A stretch of DNA of 64,000 nucleotides from Convolutriloba macropyga. Taxonomy: Eukaryota. Numbering within the stretch: position 1 is the stretch's first letter; each line of letters starts with the position of its first letter. The notes beneath the pieces were generated by a model that was not told the origin of the DNA, did no database searches, and saw nothing but the letters and a program-made list of their open reading frames with translations. Shown in pieces: positions 18,915 to 44,077 of this stretch. The DNA lies in NCBI RefSeq assembly GCF_964194025.1, contig NC_134475.1:37076001-37140000 (forward strand), given 5' to 3'. The position numbers were made by a program, and so were the translations under genes.

Positions 18915-21900
18915 TTATTTGAATAAACACCGGAATGTTATCAATGGAATTGTTTGACCAGAAGTGCTATTTTGGATTGTAAACATTCTCTTTTGCTTGT
19001 CCTCGTGGCTGTCGTGCACTGTGCATCTTTTTCCGCTCTTGAAATTAGAGCATTCTGATTGATCAACGCAAGCACCAATCGGCACTCTCCACACGGTTAC
19101 TTGCTGTTCCTTCACTCCCAGTTCTTCAGATGCCCGTGGAATCCTCTCGGAAAATTGCAGTACGTTAATGCCCTTCTGGGTTGAACTACCCACTCTTATT
19201 AGCAATCTTTCGTTGGCATTATTCAATCGGTCAAACTTCTCTTTGTACGACTTCAGCACCTTTGTTGAAATAGAAATTGTAGCGCCTTTGATAACCACTT
19301 CAAGCCCGGATTTTTGACCAGCAGAGATCAGAACCTGTAATCCTATGTCAAAAAGTTGCTGCTCAAAATAAGAGAAATTGATCTCATTTGTTGGGTCCAG
19401 ATTCAGTGAGCAAGTTGGATTGCCTGATGCCAAAATCTCTTCATCGATCGCCTCAAGCAGGTCATTCAAAGGTTCCAGAAGCAATGAGACATACCCAGTC
19501 ACGTATATGTAGTAAGGATCGTATATGCAATAAGTTGAGCGGATGACGTCATCAGAGTCTTTTGTGTCTTGACGGATAGAATCAAAGCGCCCTTTGATTG
19601 AATTGTTATTAGAGGGTGCGGATGAATTGTAAACTACATTGCATCTACCAATTAGGACATCGCAAATTAGAACATTTAAAATTTGACCATGGCATGTTTC
19701 TCCGATCGTCACACTATTTTTAGGGAATTTAATGGGAAGACCAGCTCCGTTCTGAGCTTTCCTATGGAACCCGAACTCACAAAACGATATTGGCTCTCGC
19801 GAAGCTTCTTGACTGTAATAGCAGAGAGTTTCAACATTTCTCGGATCTCTGATTTCTTTCTGTTTTTCCAGAAAAGCTCTTTTAGCAGCAACGTAATTAA
19901 CTATAGAAACCTTACTGACGCGAGCTACCAAATTTTTATAGAGAGACACAAAATTGAGAGCTTGTCCTTTCATAACAGAAACTATTTGCAGGTCTGACTC
20001 ATGAAGGAATGATGCATTGTCAATGTCAATGTCTGAGATGGAGAATCGGGACAGACGTAACGAGGGCAACTGTTCGATTTGAGCTTGAATCAGTTCAATT
20101 TTTTGTCTTTTTTCTGCCAAATCTCTAGTATCTACAGTTATTCGTGAACAAATTTTACTTCGGCTTCGGCTCCGTTCACGTCCTTTAATCCCTCTCCTTT
20201 TAGCTTCTTCACATTTTCCACATTTCGATTCGTCACATTCTTCGAAGCACTTTTTCCCACATTTATGTTGACAGGGCAGAATTTTATCGCAACCTAATTC
20301 GCACTGGAATTTATCTTTGCCGACGTTACATTTCAATTCAGAAAGGCGGTTGCATTTTTTGCATTTATGTTTGACGTTGGCCGAGCATGTCACTTCATGT
20401 TCGCTTTCGTGACATTTGCGCTGTAATTTTGAATCACATTTGCGGCATTTGAAGTTCACGTTTTGTTGACATTCGTACAAATGATCGTGATTCGATCCAC
20501 ATTTCCTAACACACTGATGACCGCATGGCAACTTGCAAGAGCATTTTCCAGGACAGTCATAGCTCTTTTTACCCTCATCGTAGCAAGGAACTCTCAGAAC
20601 AGTTCCGCAGTGATGTAAAATTTCCACAATTTGATCACAAGCTCTGCTATCATTATGATAATGCTCCTCTCCGCATTTCTTACGGCACAAGTGATGGCAT
20701 CTATCCAATTTCTTCCCACAAACTTCGTCGCATTCGGGCCTCTTAAAATCTGTGTTTTTATAACATTCAACTAATGCCGCATGTCCGCAACCAGGTCGTT
20801 CATACATCACTGTTTTGTCACATTTGACGTCTTTGATAGACTTCCAACATTCCCTTTTCAAACCTTTGCCGCATTCCAGACACTTGTCGTCAATCTGGAC
20901 CTTGCATCGAATTTTGTCGTGCCTATGAGCGGGTTCGCAAGACTCACTGCACGTGTGGCCACACTTGAGTTCCTGAGAACAGTCGTACTTGCATACGATG
21001 TCCGATTCCTTCTGGTAGCACTTCCGCTTAAGTCTATTCCCACAACGGTGCTCAAAATGTTTCAGTGCCTCGCAGTTCTGGTTGTCGTGGGAGTGTTTGC
21101 TGCTGCATGGCTTCTGACACGCATCTCCACAAGGATACAGCTTTTGTCCACATGTGAATCGACATGGTATGTTCAACTTGTCTTTGAAACATTCTGCTTG
21201 ACCGAAATGACGACCACATCTCAACTTGAACTCGACTGTGTTCCAGCATTGAACTAAAGCCGCCTTTTGGTAGCACAACTTCGATCCAAGCTGACCACAG
21301 TCCGGACAGATGTATTCCACTTGAAATGAGCATTCTGTAATTTGGCTGTTATGAGAGTGGGGAGGGTCGCATTCTTTCGGACACGGATGCCCACAAGGTT
21401 TCAAAGTAGCTGAACACTGCTCAATGCAAACTATATTAGTGTAATCTTGATGACACAACTTAATTCCTTGGTGCTTACCACAAGCATAAATGAAGGGAAC
21501 TTTTTCTTTGCATTTTTGAGGCAAATCCTTTTCAAAGCAATTCGTCTCTATTTGATGCAACTCAGCATCACACCAAACTTTTACGCGTTCAGTGCATACA
21601 ACATGGAAGTGTTTATCGCCACATTGCCGCTTGCATCGGTGCTGTATGGATTCTGCCGACTCCATATTGGCTTTTAGTGCCGAATCCGAAGTGCTTGTTG
21701 CATTGCCAGTACCTGTTGAATGATACACGTACTCACAAGGAGCGTTGCATTTGACCTCGTGCGCTTCTTGATAGCATTTCTTAGTGCCATTATGAACTCC
21801 ACAGACATGAGTAAACTCAACAGGAGCTGTACACTTGACAACCCGAGGTTCTTCATAGCATTTCTTGACACCATTATGACCACAAGGATGAACTATTTCC

Positions 21901-24567
21901 ACTTGTTCATAGCATATCTTATGATCATAGTGGAACGGTTGACATGGTAGACCACAAATGTGCAATCCACAATCCATTTGTGTACCACACGGCACAAAAC
22001 AGAAATTAGTCGAGGCAAAAGGCTCTCCCCCGACAACCACACCCTTCTTAACATCAAGATGCTTACTACAATTCAAAATAAGCTTCTTCCCAAAGCAACC
22101 TTCCTGTCTTAACCTGTTCAAAAACGGAGTCCAAACTTCACAACTTCTTTTCTGACGCTCAAGTGTGGCAGCATTGCCTAAAAATATGACACCGGACTTT
22201 CCTCGACTTTGGGCAACACAGCGTCGATTGAGAACCCCAATGAAGCCCGATGTTGCGTTTGTGTTGCTTCGCACCAGCGATACAATCACGATATCATTTT
22301 CGTCACCCTGGAAGTTGTCTATTGTCTGAACATCGATCCATTTACCTGTCAGTCTCGGGTCAGATCTCATCAAACGTCTGAGTTCTCCAGTTTGTCCTTG
22401 ATACCCTGCTAAAACTGTTAAGCTTTTAGGGTTGTAGCCATTTGCATTGATGAGGTAGGATACCAGCTCTACTACTGCTTTCGCTTCAACTCGATTGCAG
22501 TAGCTTCGACCTCCAGTTTCTGAATAATCATGATCCCAGAAGAAACAGTTAGTTGCCAAACCCCGGACAGAAGGGTTTAAGGAAACACGAGGGTGATCTC
22601 TCAATTTTGGGTATATATCTGTCAAGTACATAGAAATATCGGGTCTCATTCTATTCTGGGTTTCTAGAGTAGAAAACTCGATGTCGTTGTTGATCAATCG
22701 TTCCATCATGCTTATATCGAAATGAAACTTGTGAACCAAATCATAGCATTCTACATTTGGTCTTAATTGCTTATGATCACCTATCATAACCAAATGCTTT
22801 ACGTGGTTCCCAAGTAGAGCTATCAGCTGCGCTTCATTAATTTCTGCGGCTTCTTCTACAATGATGACTTGAGGTTGGACAACATTCAATAAATCAGCGC
22901 GCATTGCAGCTCCGGTAGTTGTCATTGCAATCACTCTCGCTTTCTTCACTGCAACTGCCTCTCTCTGCAGTCTCATTTTGGTGCGTTGCTCTATCTTCAC
23001 ATGCAGCTGCTCAAACAACTCATCCATATCATTTAAAGCCCGTTCTCTTTGTTTCCAAACAAGATATTGAACTAAATGCAACCTGTTTGCTTCCTGTAAT
23101 GTCCAAATATCTTTCACCTTCCTCAGTGACCAAAAATCCGTTCTTTTTGCCAAAATCTCAGTTGCAGACCCAAGGAACTCCATGCATTTAGGACTGCCGT
23201 GACTGCTGCCATAGGGGTCAAATTTTGGACCCACCAAGTCGCTTTCCTGGACAATAGTTTGGGTCGTGAAATCGTTTTTTAAGCCAGCAGCCTCAAATCT
23301 TTCTTCTATCAACTTTTCCGTTTCAAGGGCCAATTCCAAGTCTTGTTCATCAGTATCATTATCAGTAGTAGAATTGCTATACAGAAACCTACTTTTGTCT
23401 CGTTTTGAGCTCAACTGCTTGATTTCCGTCTCTAAATGCTGCAGCTCTCTCTGGGCTGAGAGGGTAAAAGTGTCAGAAGGCAGCCATTGATCCAAAGATT
23501 CTACTACCTTTTCCACCAGGTAGTTAATTGCAGAGTAAAACTTCCTAGTATTTAAGTGATCGAAAATTGCCTCCCCCATCAATTCGATGCAACTGTAAGC
23601 TTTCAAATGGGTTTGCAGGTCGTAGTCACTTATTTTGTCCCGTAACATATTTGCAAGTTGCAATGAATCGAAGCACTTGAGGAGCACATCAACCTCTAGG
23701 GGACTCTCGACAATTTTTCGGAATTTCTTAAAAGCTGCGTTTATTTTCAAGTTCAAATCATCTATTTCGTGGCAAATTCTCAATTCAAACTCACTTGGTT
23801 TACCTAAGACATTCTTGAGCGAATACTGGGCCATTGTGTTATCTTTTGACTGTCCACCCAGACGCAAGAAACAACCCGGAGTTTGCAAAAAATTTGTACG
23901 CAATATCGCTCGAGAGAATTCATCCAGTGCATGATTCTTATAAGTGAGTACTAAAATTGGAGAGGTCACTGCTGGACCCGTTCTAAAGTCGGCTTTCTCA
24001 CTCAATTTAAGATCGAGCAACACGTTCGTTAAATGGACACCAAGGTATGTCTTCCCAGTTCCAGGAGGTCCCTGCACAATTGAAACACGGGTCTTCAACA
24101 TGTGTTTCATAGCCTCAAACTGGCTTCCATCCAATATACAATTTGACGAGTGTTCTGCTTCATGGAAAAAATTGTCAACATTTATTGCCGTGTCTCCATC
24201 TGTATATAGCTTGTTTAAACTAAACGTTGCGCCAGCATGGGCCGAAAATCTGAAGGGAAGCGCCTGAGCTAATATCAACTCATTACGAAATGCAAAATTT
24301 GCCGATGTCAGGTCTTGCATTGATTTCAGTACTGGTTGGTAGGAGGCAAACATTGTGGGAGCTTCTACTATAACTAACGAGCCATTTCTGGACACCAAAG
24401 TTTGCAAATCCTTGGCAAAAGTAGTGTTAGGAACGTCAATATACTCCACGACAACAGTGATAGAGCCATTTGCAAATTCATCGCTTCGTCTTTGTACTGC
24501 TCCCCACACAACATCCTCAGCAAAATTAGTTGCCGACACTGCCACCAGATTCCCTCGCAGAAAGTAC
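18915..24567 (-). CDS. ZNFX1: ZNFX1-like helicase, coding exon 2 (SF1 UPF1-like helicase, NF-X1 zinc fingers, two PARP-like domains)
   Basis: Uninterrupted ORF with GPPGTGKT, VEEAAE, IGDHKQLRP, QNRM, TIDNFQGDEND, CVAQSRGK and a long Cys/His array; acceptor tttttcacgcag|G at 24568/24567 in the phase needed to join exon 1. Confidence 0.93.
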
Positions 24568-26152
24568 CTGCGTGAAAAATGACTCTGGTTAATCGGATGC
24601 GCTATAAAAGCTGACAATGAAGATCGATAATGACCGGTCGTATATAATGTTCCAACATTGCATATGCAGATTAATTTATCAAAACTTGGAATCGTAAAAC
24701 TTCTTTAACTTCTTAAGAATAAGGTGTTCACCCTTAGCTCTTATTAACTGCTGTCTAGTGGCCGCAGGGCATCACAAAGAATACAGCCGCCACTTTTCTT
24801 ATTTTTGTTCCGGTTTTGTTTATAATTTGAGAAAATCTGGTCTTCAGAAGCTAAACTCTATTTCTCGTGCACAAAGATTAAGTATCACACTCATGGTGAC
24901 AAAAAACAAACTGAGCTGGGTAAAAAAATATGGTACCAAAAAGCTACGTACCACATAATTTCTACGCTTAAAGCATGATTAGAGCTTCATAAGCATTATT
25001 TGCGCAAAAGCGTGAAAAAAGTGTGAAATTTAAAAGTTTTAAGAAAAATTTCATTCTCAATTTCTCCGCTTGAACGGAAAAAGTGGCTAAACTGCTTTGA
25101 AAATTTTTTACGCTACGAGATGTCGGATTTTCATGACCAAAAATACAAAAACAACTCAACTTGAAACAAGGATCTAGTTCACAGTATATATACAAAGGTT
25201 ACCTAAAAATAACAGTTTCGAGGACAAAAAAATCTAGCGCAAGACCGCCAAAAATGTTCAAAAAACCCAAAAAGGAGTTAACGATGTTTTAACAGACCCC
25301 CAAAAACCTCACTGCAGCGTATTGAAGTGACTTCTCCTATATATTAAACGCGTGAGCTCTAAAGTGAGACAAAAATTTTTGCATGTTTAAGGGGCCTCTC
25401 GAAGTGCATGTTAAAAGCCGCATTGAGCAGCATGGTTAAGCGAACATATAGAGAGAGGTCAATGAAATAAAAGGAATAAAGTAGATGGGTGAGAACCGAA
25501 CCTGGAACAAAAGACTGTTAACCAGGCGCAGTTACGAAAAGGCTCAGAAGGTTTGAAAGTATGCTCAACCAGAGGGAGGATTTACTGTCCTGGGTACTAC
25601 GTGTTTCTTAAATGCTTCCGAACTAGAATTGAAGTTCTTATTGTAAACGTGTGTTTTCTGCAAAGTTTTAGCTTTACAGATTCTGCGCTTTTCTAGAATA
25701 CTCTTAGCTTTCAACTAAGTTTTTTACGCTTAATTTTGATTTTTGTGTGATCTCAAATGCTCTCAATCTTGAAATACTTTTATTGATACAATAAAAGCGA
25801 TTTTGAGAAACGGGGGTATGTAGTCGTTATAGTGCAGTTGGTAAGATGGAGGACTGCTATTCTGAGGGTCGAAGGTTCGAACTCGTGTTCAGTACCATTG
25901 CTGGTGTAAATGTTTAATCAACAGCATGCCACCAGTTGCTCGAGAGCACTTCTTGCGACGCTGATTCGTTTTATGTTCCTGTGTGTGCTTGGGGGATGAA
26001 AAATGTTAATCCTATATATTAAACGCGTGAGCTCTAAAATTGGACAAAATTTTGCGTGTTTAAGGGCCTTCTCGAAAGGTTTGTTTAAGAGCCGCATTGA
26101 GCAGAATGTTAACGAACATATCGAGAGAAGTTAATGACCGAAAAGCCTCAAA

Positions 26153-26224
26153 GTAGATGGGTGAGAACCGAACCTGGAACAAAACACTGTTAGTCAGGTG
26201 CAGTTACCACGAGGCTAAGAGGGC
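26153..26224 (-). pseudogene. Second tRNA-derived module, opposite strand (representative; in all units except the deleted last one)
   Basis: Minus strand GCCCTCT-TAGCCTCGTGGTAA...CTGA-CTAACAG...CCAGGTTCGGTTC followed by a T-run; the B-box has decayed to GGTTAGG in central units. Confidence 0.6.
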
Positions 26225-27166
26225 TTGAAAATATGCTCGCCAAGAGCGAGGATTTACTCTCTTGCGTACAACGTGTTTTGTAAATGCTCCCGAACTAAAG
26301 TTGAAGCTCTTACCGTAAACGTGTGTTTTCTGCAAACTTTTAGCTTTACAGATTGAGCGCTATTCTAGAGCACTCTTAGCTTTCAACTAAGTTTTTCACG
26401 CTTAAATTTGATTTCTGTGTGATCAAATGCTCTCAATCTGAAATATTTTTGATACAATAAACGCGATTTTGAGAAACGGTGGTATGTAGTTTTTAGAGTG
26501 CAGTTGGTAATATGCACGACTGCTACTCTGAGGGTCGATATTTCGATCCCTCGTTGGGTACCCTCCCTTTTGTGGACATGAAAAATTCTAATCAACCCAT
26601 GCCGCCTGTTTTTCGAGAGCAGATCTTGCAACGCTGAGTCGTATTATGTTCCTGTATGTGTGAGAGATGAGAAATGCTAGTCTTATGTATTAAAAGCGTG
26701 AGCTCTAAAGCCGTGTAAAATTTTTGCAAGTATAAGGGGCCTCTCGAAACGCTTGTTTAGCAGCCGCATTGAGCAGCATGGTTAACGAACATATCGAGAG
26801 AGGTCAATTACCTAAAACGCTCAAAGTAGATGGGCGAGAACCTAACCTGGAATAAAAGACCGTTAGTCAGGTGCAGTTACAACGAGGCTAAGAGGGCTTG
26901 AAAATATGCTCGCCCAGAAGGAGGAGTTACTCACCTGGGTAAAACGCGTTTTTTAAATGCACCCGAGCTAAGGTTGAAATTCTTGTAGTAAACGTGTGTT
27001 TTCTACAAAATTTCAGTTTTACAGATTCTGCGCTATTCTAGAACACTCTTAGCTTTCAACTAAGTTTTTTAAGCTTAATTTTGAATTTTGTGGGATCTCA
27101 AAGGCTCTCAATCTGAAATACAATTATTGATACAATGGACGCGATTTTGAGAAACAGTGATATGTA

Positions 27167-27239
27167 GTTGTTATAGTGCAGTTGGTAATATGTGAGACTG
27201 CTACTCTGAGGGTCGATAGTTCGAACCCTTGTTGGGTAT
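27167..27239 (+). pseudogene. tRNA-derived module (representative; one per array unit)
   Basis: A-box TAGTGCAGTTGG and B-box GTTCGAACC at tRNA spacing, TTTT just downstream; stems mispair, so not a functional tRNA. Confidence 0.8.
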
Positions 27240-30200
27240 CCTCCCTTTTGTGGACATGAAAATTTCTAATCAACCCATGCCGCCTGTTTTTCGAGAGCAG
27301 GTCTTGCAACGCTGAGTCGTTTTATCTTCCTGTATGTGTGAGAGATGAGAAATCCTAGTCCTATATATTAAAAGCGTGAGCTCTAAAGCGGTACAAAACT
27401 TTTGCAAGTATAAGGGGCCTCTCGAAACGCTTGTTTAGGAGCCGCATTGAGCAGCATGGTTAACGAACATATCGAGAGAGGTCAATCACCTAAAAAACTC
27501 AAAGTAGATGGGTGAGTACCTAAACTAGAATAAAAGACCGTTAGTCAGGTGCAGTTACAACGAAGTTAAAAGGGCTTGAAAATATGCTCGCCCAGAAGGA
27601 GGAGTTATTCTCCTGGGTAAAACGTGTTTTTTAAATGCTCCCGAACTAAGGTTGAAATTCTTGTAGTAAACGTGTGTTTTCTACAAAATTTCAGTTTTAC
27701 AGATTCTGCGCTATTCTAGAACACTCTTAGCTTTCAACTAAGTTTTTTAAGCTTAATTTTGAATTTTGTGTGATCTCAAAGGCTCTCAATCTGAAATACA
27801 ATTATTGATACAATGGACGCGATTTTGAGAAACAGTGATATGTAGTTGTTATAGTGCAGTTGGTAATATGTGAGACTGCTACTCTGAGGGTCGATAGTTC
27901 GAACCCTTGTTGGGTATCCTCCCTTTTGTGGACATGAAAATTTCTAATCAACCCATGCCGCCTGTTTTTCGAGAGCAGGTCTTGCAACGCTGAGTCGTTT
28001 TATCTTCCTGTATGTGTGAGAGATGAGAAATGCTAGTCCTATATATTAAAAGCGTGAGCTCTAAAGCGGTACAAAACTTTTGCAAGTATAAGGGGCCTCT
28101 CGAAACGCTTGTTTAGGAGCCGCATTGAGCAGCATGGTTAACGAACATATCGAGAGAGGTCAATCACCTAAAAAACTCAAAGTAGATGGGTGAGTACCTA
28201 AACTAGAATAAAAGACCGTTAGTCAGGTGCAGTTACAACGAAGTTAAAAGGGCTTGAAAATATGCTCGCCCAGAAGGAGGAGTTATTCTCCTGGGTAAAA
28301 CGTGTTTTTTAAATGCTCCCGAACTAAGGTTGAAATTCTTATAGTAAACGTGTGTTTCCTGCGAAACTTTAGTTTCACAGATTCTGCGCTATTCTAGAAC
28401 ACTCTTAGCTTTCAACTAAGTTTTTTAAGCTTAATTTTGATTTTTGTGTGATCTCAAATTCTCTCAATCTGAAATACTTTTTATTGGTACAATGAACGCG
28501 ATTTTGAGAAACGGTGATATGTAGTTGTTATAGTGCAGTTGGTAATATGCACGACTGCTACTCTGAGGGTCGATAGTTCGAACCCTCGTTGGGTACCCTC
28601 CCTTTTGTGGACATGAAAATTTCTAATCAACCCATGCCGCCTGTTTTTCGAGAGCAGGTCTTGCAACGCTGAGTCGTTTTATCTTCCTGTATGTGTGAGA
28701 GATGAGAAATGCTAGTCCTATATATTAAAAGCGTGAGCTCTAAAGCGGTACAAAACTTTTGCAAGTATAAGGGGCCTCTCGAAACGCTTGTTTAGGAGCC
28801 GCATTGAGCAGCATGGTTAACGAACATATCGAGAGAGGTCAATCACCTAAAAAACTCAAAGTAGATGGGTGAGTACCTAAACTAGAATAAAAGACCGTTA
28901 GTCAGGTGCAGTTACAACGAAGTTAAAAGGGCTTGAAAATATGCTCGCCCAGAAGGAGGAGTTATTCTCCTGGGTAAAACGTGTTTTTTAAATGCTCCCG
29001 AACTAAGGTTGAAATTCTTATAGTAAACGTGTGTTTCCTGCGAAACTTTAGTTTCACAGATTCTGCGCTATTCTAGAACACTCTTAGCTTTCAACTAAGT
29101 TTTTTAAGCTTAATTTTGATTTTTGTGTGATCTCAAATTCTCTCAATCTGAAATACTTTTTATTGGTACAATGAACGCGATTTTGAGAAACGGTGATATG
29201 TAGTTGTTATAGTGCAGTTGGTAATATGCACGACTGCTACTCTGAGGGTCGATAGTTCGAACCCTCGTTGGGTACCCTCCCTTTTGTGGACATGAAAATT
29301 TCTAATCAACCCATGCCGCCTCTTTTTCGAGAGCAGATCTTGTAACGCTGAGTCGTATTATGTTACTGTATGTGTGAGAGATGAGAAACGCTAATCCTAT
29401 ATAATAAACGCGTGAGCTCTAAGGCGGGACAAAAATTTTGCAAGTACAAGGGGCCTCTCGAAACGCTTGTTTAGGAGCCGCATTGAGCAGCATGGCTAAC
29501 GAACATATCGAGAGAGGTCAATCACCTAAAACGCTCAAAGTAGATGGGGGGTGAGAACCTAAACTAGAATAAAAGACCGTTAGTCAGGTGCAGTTACAAC
29601 GAAGTTAAGAGGGCTTGAAAATATGCTCGCCCAGAAGGAGGAGTTATTCTCCTGGGTAAAACGTGTTTTTTAACTGCTCCCGAACTAAGGTTGAAATTCT
29701 TATAGTAAACGTGTGTTTCCTGCGAAACTTTAGTTTCACAGATTCCGCGCTATTCTAGAACACTCTTAGCTTTCAACTAAGTCTTTTAAGCTTAATTTTG
29801 AATTTTGTGTGATCTCAAAGGCTCTCTATCTGAAATACAATTATTGATACAATGGACGCGATTTTGAGAAACAGTGATATGTAGTTGTTATAGTGCAGTT
29901 GGTAATATGTGAGACTGCTACTCTGAGGGTCGATAGTTCGAACCCTTGTTGGGTATCCACCCTTTTGTGGACATGAAAACTTCTAATCAACCCTTGCCGC
30001 CTGTTTTTCGAGAGCAGTTCCTGCAACGCTGAGTCGTTTTATGTTCCTGTATTTGTGAGAGAGGAGAAATGCTAATCCTATATAATAAACGCGTGAGCTC
30101 TAAAGCGGTACAAAACTTTTGCAGGTGCAAGGGGCCTCTCGAAACGCTTGTTTAGGAGCCGCATTGAGCAGCATGGTTAACGAACAAATCGAGAGAGGTC

Positions 30201-33200
30201 AATCACCTAAAAAGCTCAAAGTAGATGGGTGAGAACCTAACCTGGAATAAAAGGCCATTAGTCAGGTGCAGTTACAACGAGGCTAAGAGGGCTTGAAAAT
30301 ATACTCGCACAGAAGGAGGAGTTACTCTCCTGGGTAAAACGTGTTTTTTTAATGCTCCCGAACAGAAGTTGAAATTCTTATAGTAAACGTGTGTTTTCTA
30401 CAAAATTTTAGTTTTACAGATTCTGCGCTATTCTAGAACACTCTTAGCTTTCAACTAAGTTATTTATGCTTAATTTTGATTTTTGTGTGATCTCAAATGA
30501 TCTCAATCTGAAATACTTTAATTGATACAATGAACGCGATTTTGAGAAACGGTGATATGTAGTTGTTATAGTGCAGTTGGTAATATGTACGACTGCAACT
30601 CTGAGGGTCGAGAGTTCAAACCCGCGTTGGGTACTCTGGCTTTTGTGGACATGAAAATTTCTAATCAACCCATGCCGCCTGTTTTTCGAGAGCAGTTCTT
30701 GCGACGCTGAGTCGTATTATGTTCCTGTATGTGTGAGAGATGAGAAATGCTAGTCTTATATATTAAAAGCGTGAGCTCTAAAGCCGTGTAAAATTTTTGC
30801 AAGTATAAGGGGCCTCTCGAAACGCTTGTTTAGGAGCCACATTGAGCAGCATGATTAACGAACATATCGAGAGAGGTCAATCACCTAAAAAGCTCAAAGT
30901 AGATGGGTGAGAACCTAACCTGGAATAAAAGACCATTAGTCAGGTGCAGTTACAACGAGGCTAAGAGGGCTTGAAAATATACTCGCACAGAAGGAGGAGT
31001 TACTCTCCTGGGTAAAACGTGTTTTTTAAATGCTCCCGAACTGAGGTTGAAATTCTTATAGTAAACGTGTGTTTTCTGCAAAATTTTAGTTTTACAGATT
31101 CTGCGCTATTCTAGAACACTCTTAGCTTTCAACTAAGTTTTTCAAGCTTAATTTTGATTTTTGTGTGATCTCAAATTCTCTCAATCTGAAATACTTTTAT
31201 TGATACAATGAACGCGATTTTGAGAAACGGTAATATGTAGTTGTTATAGTGCAGTTGGTAATATGTGAGACTGCTACTCTGGGGGTCAATAGTTCGAACC
31301 CTTGTTGGGTACCCGCCCTTTTGTGGACATGAAAATTTCTAATCAACCCATGCCGCCTGTTTTTAGAGAGAAGTTCTTGCAATGCTGAGTCGATTTATGT
31401 TCCTGTGTGTTTGAGGGATGAGAGATACTAATACTATGTATTAAACGCGTGAGCTCTAAGATGGGATAAAGCTTTTGCATTTTTAAGTGGACTCTCCGAG
31501 CGCATGTTTAAGAGTCGCATTGAGCAGCATGTTTAAGAGGTCATATCGAAAGAGGTCAATGACCTAAAAGACTCAAAGTAGATGGGTGAGAACCTAACCT
31601 GGAATAAAAGACCATTAGTCAGGTGCAGTTACAACGAGGCTAAGAGGGCTTGAAAATATACTCGCACAGAAGGAGGAGTTACTCTCCTGGGTAAAACGTG
31701 TTTTTTAAATGCTCCCGAACTGAGGTTGAAATTCTTATAGTAAACGTGTGTTTTCTGCACAAATTTAGTTTTACAGATTCTGCGCTATACTAGAACACTC
31801 TTAGCTTTCAACTAAGTTTTTTAAGCTTAATTTTGATTTTTGTGTGATCTCAAATTCTCTCAATCTGAAAAACTTTTTTTGATACAATGAACGCGATTTT
31901 GAGAAACGGTAATATGTAGTTGTTATAGTGCAGTTGGTAATATGTGAGACTGCTACTCTGGGGGTCAATAGTTCGAACCCTTGTTGGGTACCCGCCCTTT
32001 TGTGGACATGAAAATTTCTAATCAACCCATGCCGCCTGTTTTTAGAGAGCAGTTCTTGCAATGCTGAGTCGTTTTACCTTCCTGTATGTGTGAGAGATGA
32101 GAAATGCTAGTCCTATATATTAAAAACGTGAGCTCTAAAGCGGTACAAAACTTTTGCAAGTATAAGGGGCCTCTCGAAACGCTTCTTTAGGAGCCGCATT
32201 GAGCAGCATGGTTAACGAACATATCGAGAGAGGTCAATCACCTAAAAAGCTCAAAGTGGATGGGTGACAACCTAACCTAGAATAAAAGACCGTTAGTCAG
32301 GTGCAGTTACAACGAAGTTAAGAGGGCTTGAAAATATGCTTGCCCAGAAGGAGGAGTTACTCCCCTGGGTAAAACCTGTTTTTTAAATGCTCCCAAACTA
32401 AGGTTGAAATACTTATATTAAACGTGTGTTTCCTGCAAAATTTTAGTTTTACAGATTCTGCGCTATTCTAGAACACTCTTAGCTTTCAACTAAGTTTTTT
32501 AAGTTTAATTTTGATTTTTGTGTGATCTCAAATTCTCTCAAAATCTGAAATACTTGTATTGATACAACGAACGCGATTTCGAGAAACGGTGATATGTAGT
32601 TGTTATAGTGCAGTTGGTAATATGTGAGACTGCTACTCTGGGGGTCGATAGTTCGAACCCTTGTTGGGTTCCCGCCCTTTTGTGGACATGAAAATTTCTA
32701 ATCAACCAATGCGCCTGTTTTTCGAGAGCAGTTCTTGCAACGCTGAGTCGTTTTATGTTCCTTTATGTGTGAGACGAGAAATGCTAATCCTATATATTAA
32801 ACGCGTGAGCTCTAAAGCGGTACAAACATTTTGCAAGTGTAAGGGGCCTCTCTAAACGCTTGTTTAGGAGCCGCATTGAGCAGCATGGTTAACGAACATA
32901 TCGAGAGAGGTCAATCACCTCAAAAGCTCAAAGTGGATGGGTGAGAACCTAACCTGGAATAAAAGAACATTAGTCAGGTGCAGTTACAACGAGGCTAAGA
33001 GGGCTTGAAAATATACTCGCACAGAAGGAGGAGTTACTCTCCTGGGTAAAACGTGTTTTTTAAATGCTCCCGAACTGAGGTTGAAATTCTTAGAGTAAAC
33101 GTTGTTTTCTGCAAAATTTTAGTTTTACAGATTCTGCGCTATTCTAGAACACTCTTAGCTTTCAACTAAGTTTTTTAAGCTTAATTTTGATTTTTGTGTG

Positions 33201-36200
33201 ATCTCAAATTCTCTCAATCTGATATACTTTTATTGATGCAATGAACGCGATTTCGAGAAACGGTGATATGTAGTTGTTATAGTGCAGTTGGTAATATGTG
33301 AGACTGCTACTCTGGGGGTCGATAGTTCGGACCCTTGTTGGGTACCCGCCCTTTTGTGGACATGAAAATTTCTTATCAACCCTTGCCGCCTGTTTTTCGA
33401 GAGCACTTCTTGCAATGCTGAGTCGTTTTATGTTCCTGTATGTGTGAGAGACGAGAAAAGCTAATCCTATATATTAAACGCGTGAGCTCTAAAGCGGTAC
33501 AAACATTTTGCAAGTGTAAGGGGCCTCTCGAAACGCTTGTTTAGGAGCCGCATTGAGCAGCATGGTTAACGAACAAATCGAGAGAGGTCAATCACCTAAA
33601 AAGCTCAAAGTGGATTGGTGAGAATCTAACCGGGAATAAAAGACCATTAGTCAGGTGCAGTTACAACGAGGCTAAGGGGGCTTGAAAATATACTCGCACA
33701 GAAGGAGGAGTTACTCTCCTGGGTAAAACGTGTTTTTTAAATGCTCCCGAACTGAGGTTGAAATTCTTAGAGTAAACGTGTGTTTTCTGCAAAATTTTAG
33801 TTTTACAGATTCTGCGCTATTCTAGAACACTCTTAGCTTTCAACTAAGTATTTTAAGCTTAATTTTGATTTTTGTGTGATCTCAAATTCTCTCAATCTGA
33901 TATACTTTTATTGATACAATGAACGCGATTTCGAGAAACGGTGATATGTAGTTGTTATAGTGCAGTTGGTAATATGTGAGACTGCTACTCTGGGGGTCGA
34001 TAGTTCGAACCCTTGTTGGGTACCCGCCCTTTTGTGGACATGGAAATTTCTAATCAACCCATGCCGCCTGTTTTTCGAGAGCAGTTCTTGCAACGCTGAG
34101 TCGTTTTATGTTCCTGTATGTGTGAGCGACGAGAAATGCTAATCCTATATATTAAACGCGTGAGCTCTAAAGCGGTACAAACATTTTGCAAGTGTAAGGG
34201 GCCTCTCGAAACGCTTGTTTAGGAGCCGCATTGAGCAGCATGGTTAACGAACATATCGAGAGAGGTCAATCACCTAAAAAGCTCAAAATGGATGGGTGAG
34301 AACCTAACCTGGAATAAAAGACCATTAGTCAGGTGCAGTTACAACGAGGCTAAGAGGGCTTGAAAATACACTCGCACAGAAGGAGGAGTTACTCTCCTGG
34401 GTAAAACGTGTTTTTTAAATGCTCCCGAACTGGGGTTGAAATTCTTATAGTAAACGTGTGTTTTCTGCAAAATTTTAGTTTTACAGATTCTGCGCTATTC
34501 TAGAACACTCTTAGCTTTCAACTAAGTTTTTCAAGCTTAATTTTGATTTTTGTGTGATCTCAAATTCTCTCAATCTGATATACTTTTATTGATACAATGA
34601 ACGCGATTTCGAGAAAAGGTGATATGTAGTTGTTATAGTGCAGTTGATAATATGTGAGACTGCTACTCTGGGGGTCGATAGTTCGAACCCTTGTTGGGTA
34701 CCCGCCCTTTTGTGGACATGAAAATTTCTAATCAACCCATGCCGCCTGTTTTTCGAGAGCAGTTCTTGCAACGCTGAGTCGTTTTATGTTCCGTTATGTG
34801 TGAGAGACGAGAAATGCTAATCCTATATATTAAACGCGTGAGCTCTAAAGCGGTACAAACATTTTGCAAGTGTAAGGGGCCTCTCGAAACGCTTGTTTAG
34901 GAGCCGCATCGAGCAGCATGGTTAACGAGCAGATCGAGAGAGGTCAACCACCTAAAAAGCTCAAAGTGGATGGGTGAGAACCTAACCTGGAATAAAAGAC
35001 CATTAGTCAGGTGCAGTTACAACGAGGCTAAGAGGGCTTGAAAATATACTCGCACAGAAGGAGGAGTTACTCTCCTGGGTAAAACGTGTTTTTTAAATGC
35101 TCCCGAACTGAGGTTGAAATTCTTAGAGTAAACGTTGTTTTCTGCAAAATTTTAGTTTTACAGATTCTGCGCTATTCTAGAACACTCTTAGCTTTCAACT
35201 AAGTTTTTTAAGCTTAATTTTGATTTTTGTGTGATCTCAAATTCTCTCAATCTGATATACTTTTTTTGATACAATGAACGCGATTTCGAGAAACGGTGAT
35301 ATGTAGTTGTTATAGTGCAGTTGGTAATATGTGAGACTGCTACTCTGGGGGTCGATAGTTCGAACCCTTGTTGGGTACCCGCCCTTTTGTGGACATGAAA
35401 ATTTCTTATCAACCCTTGCCGCCTGTTTTTCGAGAGCACTTCTTGCAACGCTGAGTCGTTTTATGTTCCTGTATGTGTGAGAGACGAGAAATACTAATCC
35501 TATATATTAAACGCGTGAGCTCTAAAGCGGTACAAACATTTTGCAAGTGTAAGGGGCCTCTCGAAACGCTTGTTTAGGAGCCGCATTGAGCAGCATGGTT
35601 AACGAACATATCGAGAGAGGTCAATCACCTGAAAAGCTCAAAGTGGATGGGTGAGAACCTAACCTGGAATAAAAGACCATTAGTCAGGTGCAGTTACAAC
35701 GAGGCTAAGAGGGCTTGAAAATATACTCGCACAGAAGGACGAGTTACTCTCCTGGGTAAAACGCAATTTTTAAATGCTCCCGAACTGAGGTTGAAATTCT
35801 CATAGTAAACGTGTGTTTTCTGCAAAATTTTAGTTTTACAGATTGTGCGCTATTCTAGAACACTCTTAGTTTTCAACTAAGTTTTTTAAGCTTAATTTTG
35901 ATTTTTGTGTGATCTCAAATTCTCTCAATCTGATATCCTTTTATTGATACAATGAACGGGATTTCGAGAAACGGTGATATGTAGTTGTTATAGTGCAGTT
36001 GGTAATATGTGAGACTGCTACTCTGGGGGTCGATGGTTCGAACCCTTGTTCGGTACCCGCCCTTTTGTGGACATGAAAATTTCTAATCAACCCTTGCCGC
36101 CTGTTTTTCGAGAGCAATTCTTGCAACGCTGAGTCGTTTTATGTTCCTGTATGTGTGACAGACGAGAAATGCTATTCCTATATATTAAACGCGTGAGCTC

Positions 36201-39200
36201 TAAAGCGGTACAAACACTTTGCAAGTGTAATGGGCCTCTCGAAACGCTTGTTTAGGAGCCGCATTGAGCAGCATGGTTAACGAACATATCGAGAGAGGTC
36301 AATCACCTAAAAAGCTCAAAGTGGATGGGTGAGAACTTAACCTGGAATAAAAGACCATTAGTCAGGTGCAGTTACAACGAGGCTAAGAGGGCTTGAAAAT
36401 ATACCTGCACAGAAGGAGGAGTTACTCTCCTGGGTAAAACGTGTTTTTTAAATGCTCCCGAACTGAGGTTGAAATTCTTATAGTAAACGTGTGTTTTCTC
36501 CAAAATTTTAGTTTTACAGATTTTGCGCTATTCTAGAACACTCTTAGTTTTCAACTAAGTTTTTTAAGCTTAATTTTGATTTTTGTGTGATCTCAAATTC
36601 TCTCAATCTGATATACTTTTATTGATACAATGAACGCGATTTCGAGAAACGGTGATATGTAGTTGTTATAGTGCAGTCGGTAATATGTGAGACTGCTACT
36701 CTGGGGGTCGATAGTTTAAACCCTTGTTGGGTACCCGCCCTTTTGTGGACATGAAAAATTCTAATCAACCCATGCCGCCTGTTTTTCGAGAGCAGTTCTT
36801 GCAACGCTGAGTCCTTTTATGTTCCTGAATGTGTGAGAGACGAGAAATGCGAATCCTATATATTAAACGCGTGAGCTCTAAAGCGGTACGAACATTTTGC
36901 AAGTGTAAAGGGCCTCTCGAAACGCTTAATTAGGAGCCGCATTGAGCAGCATGGTTAACGAACATATCGAGAGAGGTCAATCACCTAAAAAGCTCAAAGT
37001 GGATGGGTGAGAACCTAACCTGTAATAAAAGACCATTAGTCAGGTGCAGTTACAACAAGGCTAAGAGGGCTTGAAAATATACTCGCACAGAAGGAGGAGT
37101 TACTCTCCTGGGTAGAACTTGTTTTTTAAATGCTCCCGAACTGAGGTTGAAATTCCTATAGTAAACGTGTGTTTTCTGCAAAAATTTAGTTTTACAGATT
37201 CGGCGCTATTCTAGAACACTCTTAGTTTTCAACTAAGTTTTTTAAGCTTAATTTTGATTTTTGTGTGATCTCAAATTCTCTCAATCTGATATCCTTTTAT
37301 TGATACAATGAACGGGATTTCGAGAAACGGTGATATGTAGTTGTTATAGTGCAGTTGGTAATATGTGAGACTGCTACTCTGGGGGTCGATGGTTCGAACC
37401 CTTGTTCGGTACCCGCCCTTTTGTGGACATGAAAATTTCTAATCAACCCTTGCCGCCTGTTTTTCGAGAGCAATTCTTGCAACGCTGAGTCGTTTTATGT
37501 TCCTGTATGTGTGACAGACGAGAAATGCTATTCCTATATATTAAACGCGTGAGCTCTAAAGCGGTACAAACACTTTGCAAGTGTAATGGGCCTCTCGAAA
37601 CGCTTGTTTAGGAGCCGCATTGAGCAGCATGGTTAACGAACATATCGAGAGAGGTCAATCACCTAAAAAGCTCAAAGTGGATGGGTGAGAACTTAACCTG
37701 GAATAAAAGACCATTAGTCAGGTGCAGTTACAACGAGGCTAAGAGGTCTTGAAAATATACTCGCACAGAAGGAGGAGTTACTCTCCTGGGTAAAACGTGT
37801 TTTTTAAATGCTCCCGAACTGAGGTTGAAATTCTTATAGTAAACGTGTGTTTTCTCCAAAATTTTAGTTTTACAGATTTTGCGCTATTCTAGAACACTCT
37901 TAGTTTTCAACTAAGTTTTTTAAGCTTAATTTTGATTTTTGTGTGATCTCAAATTCTCTCAATCTGATATACTTTTATTGATACAATGAACGCGATTTCG
38001 AGAAACGGTGATATGTAGTTGTTATAGTGCAGTCGGTAATATGTGAGACTGCTACTCTGGGGGTCGATAGTTTAAACCCTTGTTGGGTACCCGCCCTTTT
38101 GTGGACATGAAAAATTCTAATCAACCCATGCCGCCTGTTTTTCGAGAGCAGTTCTTGCAACGCTGAGTCCTTTTATGTTCCTGTATGTGTGAGAGACGAG
38201 AAATGCGAATCCTATATATTAAATGCGTGAGCTCTAAAGCGGTACGAACATTTTGCAAGTGTAAAGGGCCTCTCGAAACGCTTAATTAGGAGCCGCATTG
38301 AGCAGCATGGTTAACGAACATATCGAGAGAGGTCAATCACCTAAAAAGCTCAAAGTGGATGGGTGAGAACCTAACCTGTAATAAAAGACCATTAGTCAGG
38401 TGCAGTTACAACAAGGCTAAGAGGGCTTGAAAACATACTCGCACAGAAGGAGGAGTTACTCTCCTGGGTAGAACTTGTTTTTTAAATGCTCCCGAACTGA
38501 GGTTGAAATTCCTATAGTAAACGTGTGTTTTCTGCAAAAATTTAGTTTTACAGATTCGGCGCTATTCTAGAACACTCTTAGTTTTCAACTAAGTTTTTTA
38601 AGCTTAATTTTGATTTTTGTGTGATCTCAAATTCTCTCAATCTGATATCCTTTTATTGATACAATGAACGGGATTTCGAGAAACGGTGATATGTAGTTGT
38701 TATAGTGCAGTTGGTAATATGTGAGACTGCTACTCTGGGGGTCGATGGTTCGAACCCTTGTTCGGTACCCGCCCTTTTGTGGACATGAAAATTTCTAATC
38801 AACCCTTGCCGCCTGTTTTTCGAGAGCAATTCTTGCAACGCTGAGTCGTTTTATGTTCCTGTATGTGTGACAGACGAGAAATGCTATTCCTATATATTAA
38901 ACGCGTGAGCTCTAAAGCGGTACAAACACTTTGCAAGTGTAATGGGCCTCTCGAAACGCTTGTTTAGGAGCCGCATTGAGCAGCATGGTTAACGAACATA
39001 TCGAGAGAGGTCAATCACCTAAAAAGCTCAAAGTGGATGGGTGAGAACTTAACCTGGAATAAAAGACCATTAGTCAGGTGCAGTTACAACGAGGCTAAGA
39101 GGGCTTGAAAATATACTCGCACAGAAGGAGGAGTTACCCTCCTGGGTAAAACGTGTTTTTTAAATGCTCCCGAACTGAGGTTGAAATTCTTATAGTAAAC

Positions 39201-42002
39201 GTGTGTTTTCTCCAAAATTTTAGTTTTACAGATTTTGCGCTATTCTAGAACACTCTTAGTTTTCAACTAAGTTTTTTAAGCTTAATTTTGATTTTTGTGT
39301 GATCTCAAATTCTCTCAATCTGATATACTTTTATTGATACAATGAACGCGATTTCGAGAAACGGTGATATGTAGTTGTTATAGTGCAGTCGGTAATATGT
39401 GAGACTGCTACTCTGGGGGTCGATAGTTTAAACCCTTGTTGGGTACCCGCCCTTTTGTGGACATGAAAAATTCTAATCAACCCATGCCGCCTGTTTTTCG
39501 AGAGCAGTTCTTGCAACGCTGAGTCCTTTTATGTTCCTGTATGTGTGAGAGACGAGAAATGCGAATCCTATATATTAAACGCGTGAGCTCTAAAGCGGTA
39601 CGAACATTTTGCAAGTGTAAAGGGCCTCTCGAAACGCTTAATTAGGAGCCGCATTGAGCAGCATGGTTAACGAACATATCGAGAGAGGTCAATCACCTAA
39701 AAAGCTCAAAGTGGATGGGTGAGAACCTAACCTGTAATAAAAGACCATTAGTCAGGTGCAGTTACAACAAGGCTAAGAGGGCTTGAAAATATACTCGCAC
39801 AGAAGGAGGAGTTACTCTCCTGGGTAGAACTTGTTTTTTAAATGCTCCCGAACTGAGGTTGAAATTCCTATAGTAAACGTGTGTTTTCTGCAAAAATTTA
39901 GTTTTACAGATTCGGCGCTATTCTAGAACACTTTTAGCTTTCCACTATGTTTTTTACGCATAATTTTGGTTTTTATGATCTCAAATGCTCTCAATCTGAA
40001 ATACTTTTATTGATACAATAAACGCAATTTTGAGAAACGGTGATATGAAGTTGTTATAGTGCAGTTGGTAATATGTACGACTGCAACTCTGAGGGTCGAG
40101 AGTTCAAACCCGTGTTGGGTACCCTGGCTTTTGTGAACATGAAAACTTCTAATCAACCCACGCCGCCTGTTTTTCGAGAGCAGTTCTACCGACGCTGAGT
40201 CGATTTATGTTCCTGTGTGTTTGAGGGATGAGAAATGCCAATCCTATGTATGAAACGCGTGAGCTCTAAGATGGGACAAAACTTTTGCATTTTTAAGTGA
40301 ACTCTCCGAGCGCATTTTTAAGAGCCGCATTGAGCAGCATGGTTAAGAGATCATACCGAAAGAGGTCAATGACCTAAAATACTCAATGTAGATGGGTGAG
40401 ATCCGAACTTGGGACGAAAGACTGTTAGTCAGGTGCAGTTACCAAGAAGTTAAAAGGGCTTGAACATATGCTCGCTTGGAAGGAGAGGTTACTCTCCTGG
40501 GTACAACGTGTTTTTTAAATGCTCCCGAACTAAAGTTGAAGTTCTTATTGTAATTGTGTGTTTTCTGCAAAAATTTAGTTTTACAGATTCTGCACTATTC
40601 TAGAACACTCTTAGCTTTCAACTACAATTTTTACGCTTAATTTCGATTTTTGTGTGATCTCAAATGCTCTCAATCTGAATTATTTTTATTGATACAATAA
40701 ACAAGATTTTGAGAAGCGGGTACATGTAGTTGTTACAGTGCAGTTGGTAATATGTACGACTGCTACTCTGAGGGTCGAGAGTTTAAACCCGTGTTGGGTA
40801 CCCTACCTTTTGTGGACATGAAAATCTCTAATCAACCCATGCCGCCTGTTTTTCGAGAGCAGTTTTTGCGAAGCTGAGTCGTTTTATGTTCCTGTGTGTT
40901 TGATGGATGAGAAATGCTAATCCTATATATTATACGCGTGAGCTCTAAGATGGGACAAAATTTTTCCATTTTTAAGGGGCCTCCAGGAGCTTATGTTTAA
41001 AAGCCGCATTGAGCAGCATGGTTAAGTGAACATATCGATAGATGTCAATGACCTAAAAGACTTAATGTAGATGGGTGAGATCCGAAAATGGGACGAAAGA
41101 CTGTTAGTCAGGTGCAGTTACCATGAGGCCTAGAGGGCTTGAGCATATGCTCGCTTAGAAGGAGAAGTTACTCTCCTGGGTACGTGTTCTTTAAATGCTC
41201 CCGAACTAAATTTGGAGTTCTTATAGTAATTGTGTGTTTTCTGCAAAATTATAGTTTAACAGATTCTGCGCTACTCTAGAACACTCTTAGCTTTCAACTA
41301 AGTTTTTTACGTATAATTTTGTTTTTTAGTGATCTCAAATGCTCTCAATCTGAAATACTTTTATTGATACAATAAACGCGATTTTGAGAAACGGGGGTAT
41401 GTAGTTCTTTTAGTGCAGTTGGTAATATGTCGGACTGCTACTCGGAGGGTTGATAGTTCGAATCAGTGCTTGTAAGCCTCCCTTTTGTGGACATGAAAAT
41501 TTCTAATCAACCCATGCCGCCTGTTTTTCGAGAGCAGTTCTTGCGACGCTGAGTCATTTTATGTTCCTGTGTGTTTGAGGGATGAGAAATGCTAATCCTA
41601 TATATTAAACGCTTGAGCTCTCAGATGGAACAAAATTTTTGCTTTTTTAAGGGCCTCTCAAAGCGCATGTTTAAGAGCCCCATTAGGAGAACTTTCAACT
41701 AAAGTTTACACGCTTTACTTTTTGGTTTTGTGTGATCTCAAATGCTCTCAATCTGAAATATGTTGAATGATACGATAAAAGTGATTGTAAGAAACGTTGG
41801 TATGTAGTCGTTATAGTGCAGTTTGTAAGATGGAGGACTGCCACTCTGAAGGTCGAAGGTTCGAATCCGTGTCGGATAACCTCATTTTTGTAGACATATA
41901 AATTTCTAATCAACACCATGCCCCCTGTTGTTCGAGAGCACTTCTTGCGACGCTGAGTCGTTTTATGTTCCTGTGTTTGTGTTTGGGGGATGAAAATACT
42001 AA

Positions 42003-43250
42003 TATAATATATTAAAATTAACTCGCGCTCGAACGCAATGGTTAACTACGCTCCTGACTTCACATGTTTTAACGATCCTTAAACTTGCAGCCTATACAGC
42101 CATGCTTAAGTGCCTGATCTGCAAATTCTTTGTTGCTCTTTAGCCGTACAGCTTAGCAAAAATAGCGAGACAAAAAATCAATTGACCAAAATCTTGCCTA
42201 TGTAGCCACCACCGATAGACAACAGCAACAGGCGTCGGTAGCTCAAAAGAATAGATCTGTAGATGTGAAGAGAGGGGAATGGGTTCGAGCCCGAGTAGGG
42301 GAGGAAAAGTTTTCATAATGTACGGGGATGAAAAATGTACGCGGAGTTGGTTGTCTTTTTTCACTTCTTCATTTGTTTGCTTTTATTTTTTACTTATATC
42401 TTCGTTTCCTTCTTTCTCTTAGCCTTCATCTTTTATATCTTTCTCCATTTCTTTCTCTTCCTTTTATCTAATATATTAAATGTAAGTCGAAATTGAGCGC
42501 ATTGATTAACAGCGCTCCTATCGTCATATGTTTTAACAATCCTTAAACATGCAACCTACACGACCATTCTTAAGCGCCTGATCTGCAAATGTTTTTTACT
42601 CATTAAGCATACAGCTTGGCAAAAACAATCGAGACCAAAAGGCCATTGACCAAAGTTTTGAGTATGAAGCCACTTCTTTAGACAACAGCAACAGGCGTCG
42701 GTAGTACAAGGGATTAGAAATGTGGCTGTGAAGAGAGGGTCAAGGATTCGATCCCTAGTAGGTGCGAAAAAGGATGCATAGTGTACTGGGATAAAAAATG
42801 GGGAAATGAGTTTCCCTTACCCTTCATTTTTTGCTTTTATTTGTTACTTGTTTATAGTAATTATCAGTCGCAATTGAGCACAATGGTCAACAGCACTCCT
42901 ATCGCAATGTGTTTTAGGGGTCCTTAATGATGCATCCTAGCGTAATAAATGCGTTTTGAGACGCGCTTTACCATCATTTTTAAGCTCCTATTACGCACAT
43001 TTTTTTCGCACTCATTAGGCATGCGGTATAGCAAAGAAGCAAGTCACAAACGCCATTGTCCAGAAATTTGCTGTAGAAAGACAAGTGCAATATGTATAGA
43101 TAGCTTAGGTGGTGAGACCTATGGTTGTTGAGCGAGGGGCATGGGTTCCAGATCGAGTTGGTGCGAAACAGAAACCTTTACGAAACCTTCTTTTGAAACT
43201 TCCAATCTTGTAAATGATTTTCTTATGATTTTACGTGCCCGCTAGTAACA
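42003..43250 (+). repeat. Three diverged ~400-465-bp sister units, each with a tRNA-like module
   Basis: Units at ~42003, ~42467 and ~42850; tRNA-like segments at ~42232-42303 (GGTTCGAGCCC), ~42695-42767 and ~43092-43165; a CTAG|T occurs at ~43242-43246. Confidence 0.75.
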
Positions 43251-44077
43251 TTGAAGTGTCTCATTTTCAGGACCCTAGTTTTCAAAAACATAACGCCCTG
43301 TTCAGAAACCGAAGCGTACTGACTATTTTGTGTCCAAGAAAAGCAATAGAAGGCCAAGAAAAGGTCGGTGAAAGGAGTAGAGCTCGGATCCTAATCCTAT
43401 TGAAAATTTATTTGTAATTTTGAGGAAGCAGTTACCAAAACATAGATTTCGAGGCATCAATTACGAAAACAGACAATTACGAAAACAAGCAGCAAACACG
43501 AAAGCAGACATAAAATTTGAAATCAAAATGCAATTTTTGATGTTTGAAATGCTTTTTAAAAAATCTTTCGTTTTACGTAGCTTTTTGGTACCATAGTGTA
43601 CCGAAGGCTGCCCTATTGAACCTTGTTTGGTTGCCACCAAAATATAACAAACTATAACGCTAAATATAACAGCCTTATGACGTACTAGCCTAAGTAGAGA
43701 AAAAAATGTGAGCCTAGTCTTCCAAAACTTCTATTTCTCCTATGGCGAAACACATCTCGCAACATGAAGCGTAAGAAGCCGACTTTTAAACCAACTTTTG
43801 TGTAAAATTTCAAACGGGTTCTCTAAAATAATAAGAAAAAAGATTCTTCATGCCCTTGACTCTATTTCAAACTAGGTTTCAGACAACTCTCTATGGATGT
43901 CCAAAACTTCAGATTTAAGCTACATGTCGACATTTTTTAAATATTTCAAGAATTTCTCCGTTTCTTTGCAAATATCGGAAAAATCTAATATCAATTTTAA
44001 TATACACAAAACTAATATCAATTTTAAAACAAAAACACTGCAAACCGCAAATTATTTACGTTGAACGTATTATAAAA

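Follow-up and report, generated by a model that had tools for sequence, protein, structure and literature searches.

A ZNFX1-type helicase of the acoel Convolutriloba macropyga predicted to end in two inactive PARP-derived domains

Vertebrate ZNFX1 is an innate-immune RNA helicase. The C-terminus of the human protein consists of a Miz-like domain and an RZ finger, which together form a two-step E3 ubiquitin ligase (bioRxiv 10.1101/2025.10.14.682297). A stretch of 64,000 nucleotides from the genome of the acoel Convolutriloba macropyga (contig NC_134475.1, positions 37,076,001 to 37,140,000; here called the window) encodes a ZNFX1-like protein, and the question raised by this locus is what stands at the C-terminus of the protein and what it could do there. 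The tail is encoded at the end of a single intact minus-strand open reading frame (ORF) of 1900 codons (18915-24617). All positions refer to the window, all features of the gene are on the minus strand, and ORF residue n corresponds to residue n+536 of the full-length protein. An initial annotation had proposed two tandem, catalytically dead PARP domains at this site instead of an RZ finger, in what was possibly a poorly described invertebrate immune architecture. The reading which we regard as probable is that of a ZNFX1-type RNA helicase with a non-catalytic adaptor made of two PARP-derived domains, the first of which would be under constraint and the second eroding.

Pseudo-PARP domain 1 was located at 19464..20051 (ORF residues 1523-1718) by model boundaries, profile matching and fold comparison. 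Its motifs ETLCYYSQ, GLPIKF, VLICDVLIG, FDSI and YCIYDP correspond to ..KFHGT, GIYFA, LLLCEVLLG, YDSL and EYVIYNP of the relatives. A profile built from 49 non-acoel tails, referred to as the canonical-only profile, matched the tail with 42.4 bits, whereas the best of 1000 shuffled sequences reached 7.3 bits; the match spans domain 1 and the inter-domain linker. In a BLASTP comparison of the tail from the horseshoe crab Tachypleus with the window protein, PARP domain 1 was matched to ORF residues 1579-1702. An AlphaFold2 model of ORF residues 1520-1900, based on an alignment of 60 sequences, reached a predicted local distance difference test score (pLDDT) of 85.9 and a predicted template-modelling score of 0.82, with pLDDT values of 82-98 in domain 1. 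Foldseek found 362 matches of this model in the PDB at E<=1e-3, the best 50 of which were all PARP catalytic domains, and VIA-align superposed model residues 4-199 on tankyrase with a Z of about 17 and a root-mean-square deviation of 2.7 Å over 176 residues. Since the profile, BLASTP, Foldseek on the model and VIA-align all agree, domain 1 is clearly PARP-derived. Language-model features, which are computed from the single sequence and are alignment-free, gave a value of 0.93 to PARP clusters for domain 1 alone. The search against PF00644 that the initial annotation had suggested was negative: Pfam gave no match at E<=1 for the tail or for either half, and the PF00644 gathering threshold was not reached. 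With phmmer, zero matches of the tail to PDB sequences were obtained at E<=10, and with a profile made from the domain 1 sequences of six acoel-clade members, PARP12 and SRO1 came first in the PDB at a non-significant E of 0.6-1.1.

Domain 1 is followed by a helical inter-domain linker at 19416..19463 (ORF residues 1719-1734; model helix 198-212) and by pseudo-PARP domain 2 at 18921..19415 (ORF residues 1735-1899), which was assigned by a profile, the model and the alignment to the P0004 group. This group consists of P0004 and P0017-P0021, six paralog-like proteins in which domain 1 is dead and domain 2 has retained a histidine, a tyrosine and a methionine (H-Y-M) and passes the Pfam PARP model. 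Domain 2 of P0004 itself (ENA ERZ26859043) scores 53.4 bits with PF00644, compared to a cut-off of 26.7, and domain 2 of the window protein could be aligned with it column by column. A profile of the six P0004-group sequences gave 17.9 bits on domain 2 (shuffle maximum 6.6). The motifs LLIRVG, VWRVPIG, HDS, MFTI and QTIPLITF stand in place of LAFHGT, LLCKVLPG, YDS, EIVIF and QILPCYVI of the relatives. A model of domain 2 alone reached a pLDDT of 83, and Foldseek ranked the pseudo-PARP domain of TASOR (6tl1) first with an E of 5.7e-5, followed by PARP1, RCD1 and PARP14/15; these matches range from E 6e-5 to 1e-3 with template-modelling scores of 0.55-0.63. Domain 2 is far more decayed than domain 1, and is probably PARP-derived, as suggested by the link to the P0004 group, the collinear position and the resemblance of the model. 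The motif strings quoted in the initial annotation were all recovered in the minus-strand translation, each aligned to the corresponding PARP motif of the canonical relatives, and both segments gave ADP-ribosyltransferase (ART)/PARP fold matches by AlphaFold and Foldseek, with models made from family alignments. Its domain coordinates were about right, except that by the models both domains start earlier than it had placed them.

Between two strands of domain 2, at 18990-19080 (ORF residues ~1847-1876), the pattern Cys...Cys-x2-His-Asp-Ser-His was observed, which is common to the window protein and three P0004-group members; the Cys pair is lacking in the canonical relatives aligned. The pattern could be a candidate small zinc site. 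The catalytic domains of tankyrases carry a zinc motif, to which it is somewhat similar.

The positions of the catalytic histidine, tyrosine and glutamate (H-Y-E) were compared in both domains. For domain 1, the H is present in 44 of the 49 canonical sequences, is T or P in the P0004 group and corresponds to S1602 in the window protein; the Y (48/49) is C, E or T in the P0004 group and K1630 in the window protein, and the E (47/49) is E, R, K or S in the P0004 group and T1695 in the window protein. For domain 2, both H and Y are found in all 49 canonical sequences and in the P0004 group; in the window protein the H is replaced by V1809, and the Y is lost with a deletion of about 17-22 residues which removes the loop bearing it. 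The third position of domain 2 is E in 23, M in 15 and other residues in 11 canonical sequences, M in the P0004 group and M1878 in the window protein. The triad for binding nicotinamide adenine dinucleotide (NAD+), either H-Y-E or H-Y-hydrophobic, is kept in neither domain, in agreement with the loss claimed by the initial annotation. Because the residues needed by known PARPs for NAD+ use are missing from both domains, the prediction that both are catalytically dead is well founded.

A remaining ability of either or both domains to catalyse ADP-ribosylation, or to bind NAD+ or ADP-ribose, by means of non-canonical residues appears very unlikely. The overall ART fold of domain 1 is predicted with confidence, and domain 2 of the sister group still contains H-Y-M, so that the loss in this lineage is only recent; both would suit a residual activity. 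This is opposed by the replacement of His, both Tyr and Glu in domain 1, and in domain 2 by the replacement of the His and the deletion of the strand-loop with the nicotinamide-stacking Tyr. PARP13, TASOR and RCD1 are PARP-fold proteins with similar changes that are reported to be inactive, which also weighs against activity.

The remainder of the protein was identified as ZNFX1-like. An SF1 (UPF1-like) helicase core is encoded at 22170..24134 (ORF residues 162-816), with Pfam matches to AAA_11 (79 bits) and AAA_12 (107.5 bits). Among all solved-structure sequences, human ZNFX1 (9q9z) was the top match with 312 bits (E 5.7e-92), whereas UPF1, SEN1 and aquarius reached at most about 100 bits; the helicase chassis was for this reason assigned to the ZNFX1 type, as the initial annotation had it. 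A Cys/His-rich finger stalk of putative NFX1 type follows at 20178..22070 (ORF residues 850-1480), which consists of repeated C-x-H-x-C...C...H-x-H units and is alignable to the stalks of the relatives; Pfam reported no zf-NF-X1 match on it. The stalk is connected to the tail by a basic, probably helical linker at 20052..20177 (ORF residues 1481-1522), as judged from the sequence and the alignment to the relatives. Vertebrate ZNFX1 (9q9z) and the window protein are alike in this arrangement of an SF1 helicase with regulatory insertions and a subsequent Cys/His finger stalk. They differ at the C-terminus, where human ZNFX1 has its Miz-like domain and RZ finger and the window protein has the two PARP-derived domains. 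The absence of an RZ finger was borne out, with none reported by Pfam at E<=1; the C-terminal pair of Miz-like domain and RZ finger had no Pfam match either, the two PARP-fold domains take up the whole tail, and just a single residue follows the last strand of domain 2.

To place the tail among its relatives, 1.8 billion representative sequences were searched with phmmer, which yielded four clusters only: P0001, the second haplotype of the gene; P0002 (XP_075238973.1), a paralog from C. macropyga which ends behind the first of the two tail domains; P0003, a protein of Symsagittifera roscoffensis named 'NFX1-type zinc finger-containing protein 1-like'; and P0004. A word-indexed homolog search with the tail returned the second haplotype only. 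When the PARP domain of P0004 and, subsequently, the tail of the horseshoe crab were used as queries, at least 94 clusters were obtained in total. AAA_11/AAA_12 and PF00644 occur together in almost all of them, cold-shock domains and the Pfam ZNFX1 domain are additionally present in many, and an RZ finger is listed in none. Members of this helicase-PARP-PARP family were found in the horseshoe crabs Tachypleus and Limulus, the jellyfish Rhopilema (Cnidaria), Artemia, Macrostomum, the annelid Paralvinella, Cryptomeria, Taxus and EukProt protists. In the three members that were scanned (P0025, P0067 and P0090), PF00644 occurs twice in tandem with 122-136 bits. The AlphaFold DB matches to the tail extend over both domains, and the tails of the window protein and the canonical relatives can be aligned end to end.

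The window protein is collinear with P0025 from Tachypleus tridentatus, P0030 from Limulus (LOC106460493), P0067 from Rhopilema esculentum, P0110 from Paralvinella and P0090 from Cryptomeria japonica. The common order is helicase, finger stalk, helical linker, PARP, linker and PARP, with no RZ finger, and the window protein is nested in the same tree, in line with common descent. The canonical members have H-Y-E in domain 1 and H-Y followed by E, M, I or another residue in domain 2, whereas the catalytic residues are missing from the window protein. Canonical members also often carry N-terminal cold-shock domains and the Pfam ZNFX1 domain (PF25396), whereas no PARP, CSD or ZNFX1 match was reported by Pfam for the window protein, with PF25396, which lies upstream of the helicase, absent across the full 2436 residues. 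Inspection of the sequences by eye suggests that a PF25396 motif possibly survives near the start of exon 2.

The genes of the family lie on chromosome-scale scaffolds in the conifers Cryptomeria japonica (P0090) and Taxus chinensis (P0100), and members are also present in protist transcriptomes (EukProt P0072 and P0103). The family looks pan-eukaryotic rather than an invertebrate invention, with an unsure placement of the conifer and protist members in the tree, where they form long branches. In Artemia franciscana (P0075-P0078), the tandem PARP tail is combined with AAA_12, double-stranded RNA-binding domains (PF00035) and JAZ-type C2H2 fingers; PCI/eIF3 domains are additionally listed for one isoform, perhaps owing to a fusion in the gene model. 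The RNA-binding domains of the Artemia proteins fit an RNA-directed role of the family. In public databases some of the members carry automatic names such as 'NFX1-type zinc finger-containing protein 1-like' and 'Poly [ADP-ribose] polymerase'. No paper describing the family was found in a literature scope without Blasi et al. 2022 on metazoan ZNFX1, and no open papers combining 'NFX1-type zinc finger' with 'PARP catalytic domain' were found. A helicase fusion is not mentioned in Citarelli 2010 on PARP evolution, and PARP is not mentioned in the ZNFX1 reviews or in bioRxiv 10.1101/2025.10.14.682297. The architecture is not new, but widespread in eukaryotes and apparently unstudied; of the initial annotation's view, the poor description stood, within that literature scope, and the restriction to invertebrates did not, the survey of homologs having shown a common architecture that is already named automatically. 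Since at least 94 clusters from animals, conifers and protists combine the helicase with the tandem PARP pair, the 'swap' of the module is ancient, and what sets this lineage apart is that the catalytic residues have been lost. The state with two pseudo-PARP domains seems to be confined to a small acoel clade.

The order in which the residues were lost was deduced from a FastTree phylogeny of 43 full-length proteins, a quick method with midpoint rooting only. The window protein and its paralog group with Symsagittifera, and the P0004 group was placed as the sister of these three, with 100% local support for this relationship and 99-100% for each node. The P0004 group is the sister group of the acoel genes and a natural intermediate state. 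By parsimony, the triad of domain 1 would have been lost once, on the stem of the nine proteins from Convolutriloba, Symsagittifera and the P0004 group; domain 2 would have lost its H and the Y loop later, on the Convolutriloba/Symsagittifera branch; and it would finally have been dropped entirely in the C. macropyga paralog. Within 4 kb past the stop codon of the paralog (L003, ENA ERZ25071359, ctg23824), no remnant of domain 2 was detected.

The tail could also be only a decaying relic, with both PARP-derived domains being functionless and the helicase working without them. This would be compatible with the absence of domain 2 from the paralog P0002, its severe truncation in Symsagittifera and the identity of only 10-32% over linker and domain 2. 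It is at variance with domain 1, which is retained in all nine clade members and is as conserved as the finger stalk, with identities to the paralog, Symsagittifera and P0004 of 40, 35 and 33% for domain 1 and 44, 39 and 37% for the stalk. Between the haplotypes, the ratio of non-synonymous to synonymous substitution rates (dN/dS) was 0.39 overall and 0.21 for both the helicase and domain 1, and rose to 0.53 in domain 2, all calculated from tiny counts; the value for domain 2 speaks for a relic and that for domain 1 against it. Furthermore, the ~380 codons of the tail are open in both haplotypes, and in contigs out of four runs from three samples all six length variants were located 3' of the stop codon, in the adjoining 3' untranslated region (UTR), compared to 0 within the 5.7-kb coding sequence. 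We consider a relic unlikely. Taken together, the identities, the haplotype dN/dS and the length variants support a functional gene in which domain 1 appears constrained and domain 2 relaxing. When judged as a pseudo-PARP, the fold is kept and the residues are lost, and selection is suggestive for domain 1 and weak or absent for domain 2.

Several points weigh against the proposed adaptor of two PARP-derived domains. On the canonical-only profile, domain 2 scored 0.9 bits, which is inside the shuffle range (maximum 6.1). A direct homology of domain 2 to canonical PARPs was dropped for this reason, so that of the two tandem PARP-derived domains claimed initially, the first was obtained directly and the second by way of the P0004 group. 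Both structure models were built on alignments consisting mostly of canonical PARPs, and the family fold could have been imposed on domain 2, in which the pLDDT is only 48-63 at the site of the deletion. At the His column of domain 1, the MAFFT register could be off by one residue, so that either S1602 or Y1601 occupies it; neither is a His. The haplotype changes in the tail, 7 synonymous and 13 non-synonymous, are too few for conclusions on selection. Finally, the runs covering the locus are not of a known RNA kind, and transcription is not proven by them.

The last point, together with a 22-kb intron filled with satellite DNA, would suit an unexpressed or mis-modelled pseudogene whose protein is never made. 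We consider this highly improbable. Exon 1 was identified at 46974..48631 by tblastn of XP_075252692.1, with the start codon at 48631 and a GT donor after 46974, and encodes residues 1-552 and two bases of codon 553. It is separated by a GT-AG intron of 22,406 nt (24568..46973), with splice sites read from the sequence, from exon 2 at 18915..24567, which is the exon portion of the ORF and encodes residues 553-2436 with the stop codon at 18915-18917. The spliced coding sequence (48631-46974 and 24567-18915) has a perfect frame of 2436 codons with canonical GT-AG sites, and its translation shows 0 differences to XP_075252692.1, annotated in RefSeq as 'uncharacterized protein LOC142344706'. The ORF is intact in the second haplotype (98% identity over the ORF), and intact paralogs and orthologs are present. 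A 7336-nt contig reaches 2215 nt beyond 24400, which by arithmetic only would suit exon 1 with a 5' UTR better than an assembly of satellite. The satellite array within this single intron is ~16 kb long and is located at about 25.3-42 kb.

For the adaptor reading, a mechanism can be proposed in which the tandem module would have been inherited from the old eukaryotic family, in which H-Y-E is found in domain 1, and domain 2 contains H-Y and, at the third position, E, M or a different residue. The helicase and the finger stalk would engage RNA, and the PARP-derived pair, in place of the Miz/RZ output module, would no longer be able to bind or use NAD+. Domain 1 would serve as a non-catalytic docking or regulatory surface, and domain 2, under weaker constraint, would probably be eroding. 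Inactive PARP domains of this kind, in ZAP-L/PARP13, TASOR, PARP9 and plant RCD1, are thought to act as docking or regulatory surfaces, and by analogy an adaptor role is the most likely one for the acoel pair. An antiviral or small-RNA role would be an extrapolation from ZNFX1 of vertebrates and C. elegans, and the immune function suggested in the initial annotation would likewise be carried over from vertebrate ZNFX1.

The pseudo-PARPs TASOR (6tl1), ZAP/PARP13 (4x52), RCD1 of Arabidopsis (5ngo) and SRO1 (7plq) share with the window protein a PARP fold without the triad. TASOR and RCD1 are among the best structural matches for domain 2, PARP13 is among those for the whole-tail model, and SRO1 ranked top, without significance, in the profile search with domain 1 mentioned above. 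In ZAP, too, a dead PARP domain is joined to a module that binds RNA. These proteins differ from the window protein by an independent origin, by a single pseudo-PARP domain each and by other partners (CCCH fingers, SPOC, WWE/RST), and their sequence identity to the window tail is just 12-16%. For active PARPs (tankyrase 1/2, PARP4 and PARP12), the model of domain 1 superposes on the tankyrase catalytic domain, and PARP12 is the best PDB sequence match to domain 2 of the P0004 group. In contrast to active PARPs, the window tail has no H-Y-E, no PF00644 match and no attached ankyrin, SAM or WWE domains.

The window gene alone is a modest addition, with one more pseudo-PARP in a protein already listed as 'uncharacterized' in RefSeq. 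The locus points to a sister architecture that is large and apparently unstudied, with two PARP domains on the ZNFX1 chassis, of which the first has the complete H-Y-E. Together with the acoel genes, its members form a natural series, from both domains being active-looking (canonical relatives) to domain 1 being dead and domain 2 intact (P0004 group), both being dead (window gene) and domain 1 only (paralog). With this series, the task of the PARP module on the helicase could be addressed, as could the question of whether scaffolding is retained by a dead PARP domain as in ZAP-L, TASOR and RCD1. As a more general but rather tentative proposal, the ZNFX1 chassis might, across eukaryotes, carry either a Miz/RZ ligase or a tandem PARP pair, the latter having been converted stepwise to a selected non-catalytic adaptor in acoels. 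If true, the acoel protein would be an RNA-sensing helicase of a new kind, in which a pseudo-enzyme provides the output in parallel to ZAP-L and TASOR, and RNA-helicase sensors would be tied to the interplay of ubiquitin and ADP-ribose.

At the 3' edge of the gene, ~400 nt past the stop codon, the contig word depth at 18400-18505 rises to ~42,000-122,000 in three of the four runs, compared to 15-113 over the gene. A joint between opposite strands at 18418/18464 and numerous loose ends were identified at this site, which is a short element of very high copy number or very high expression.

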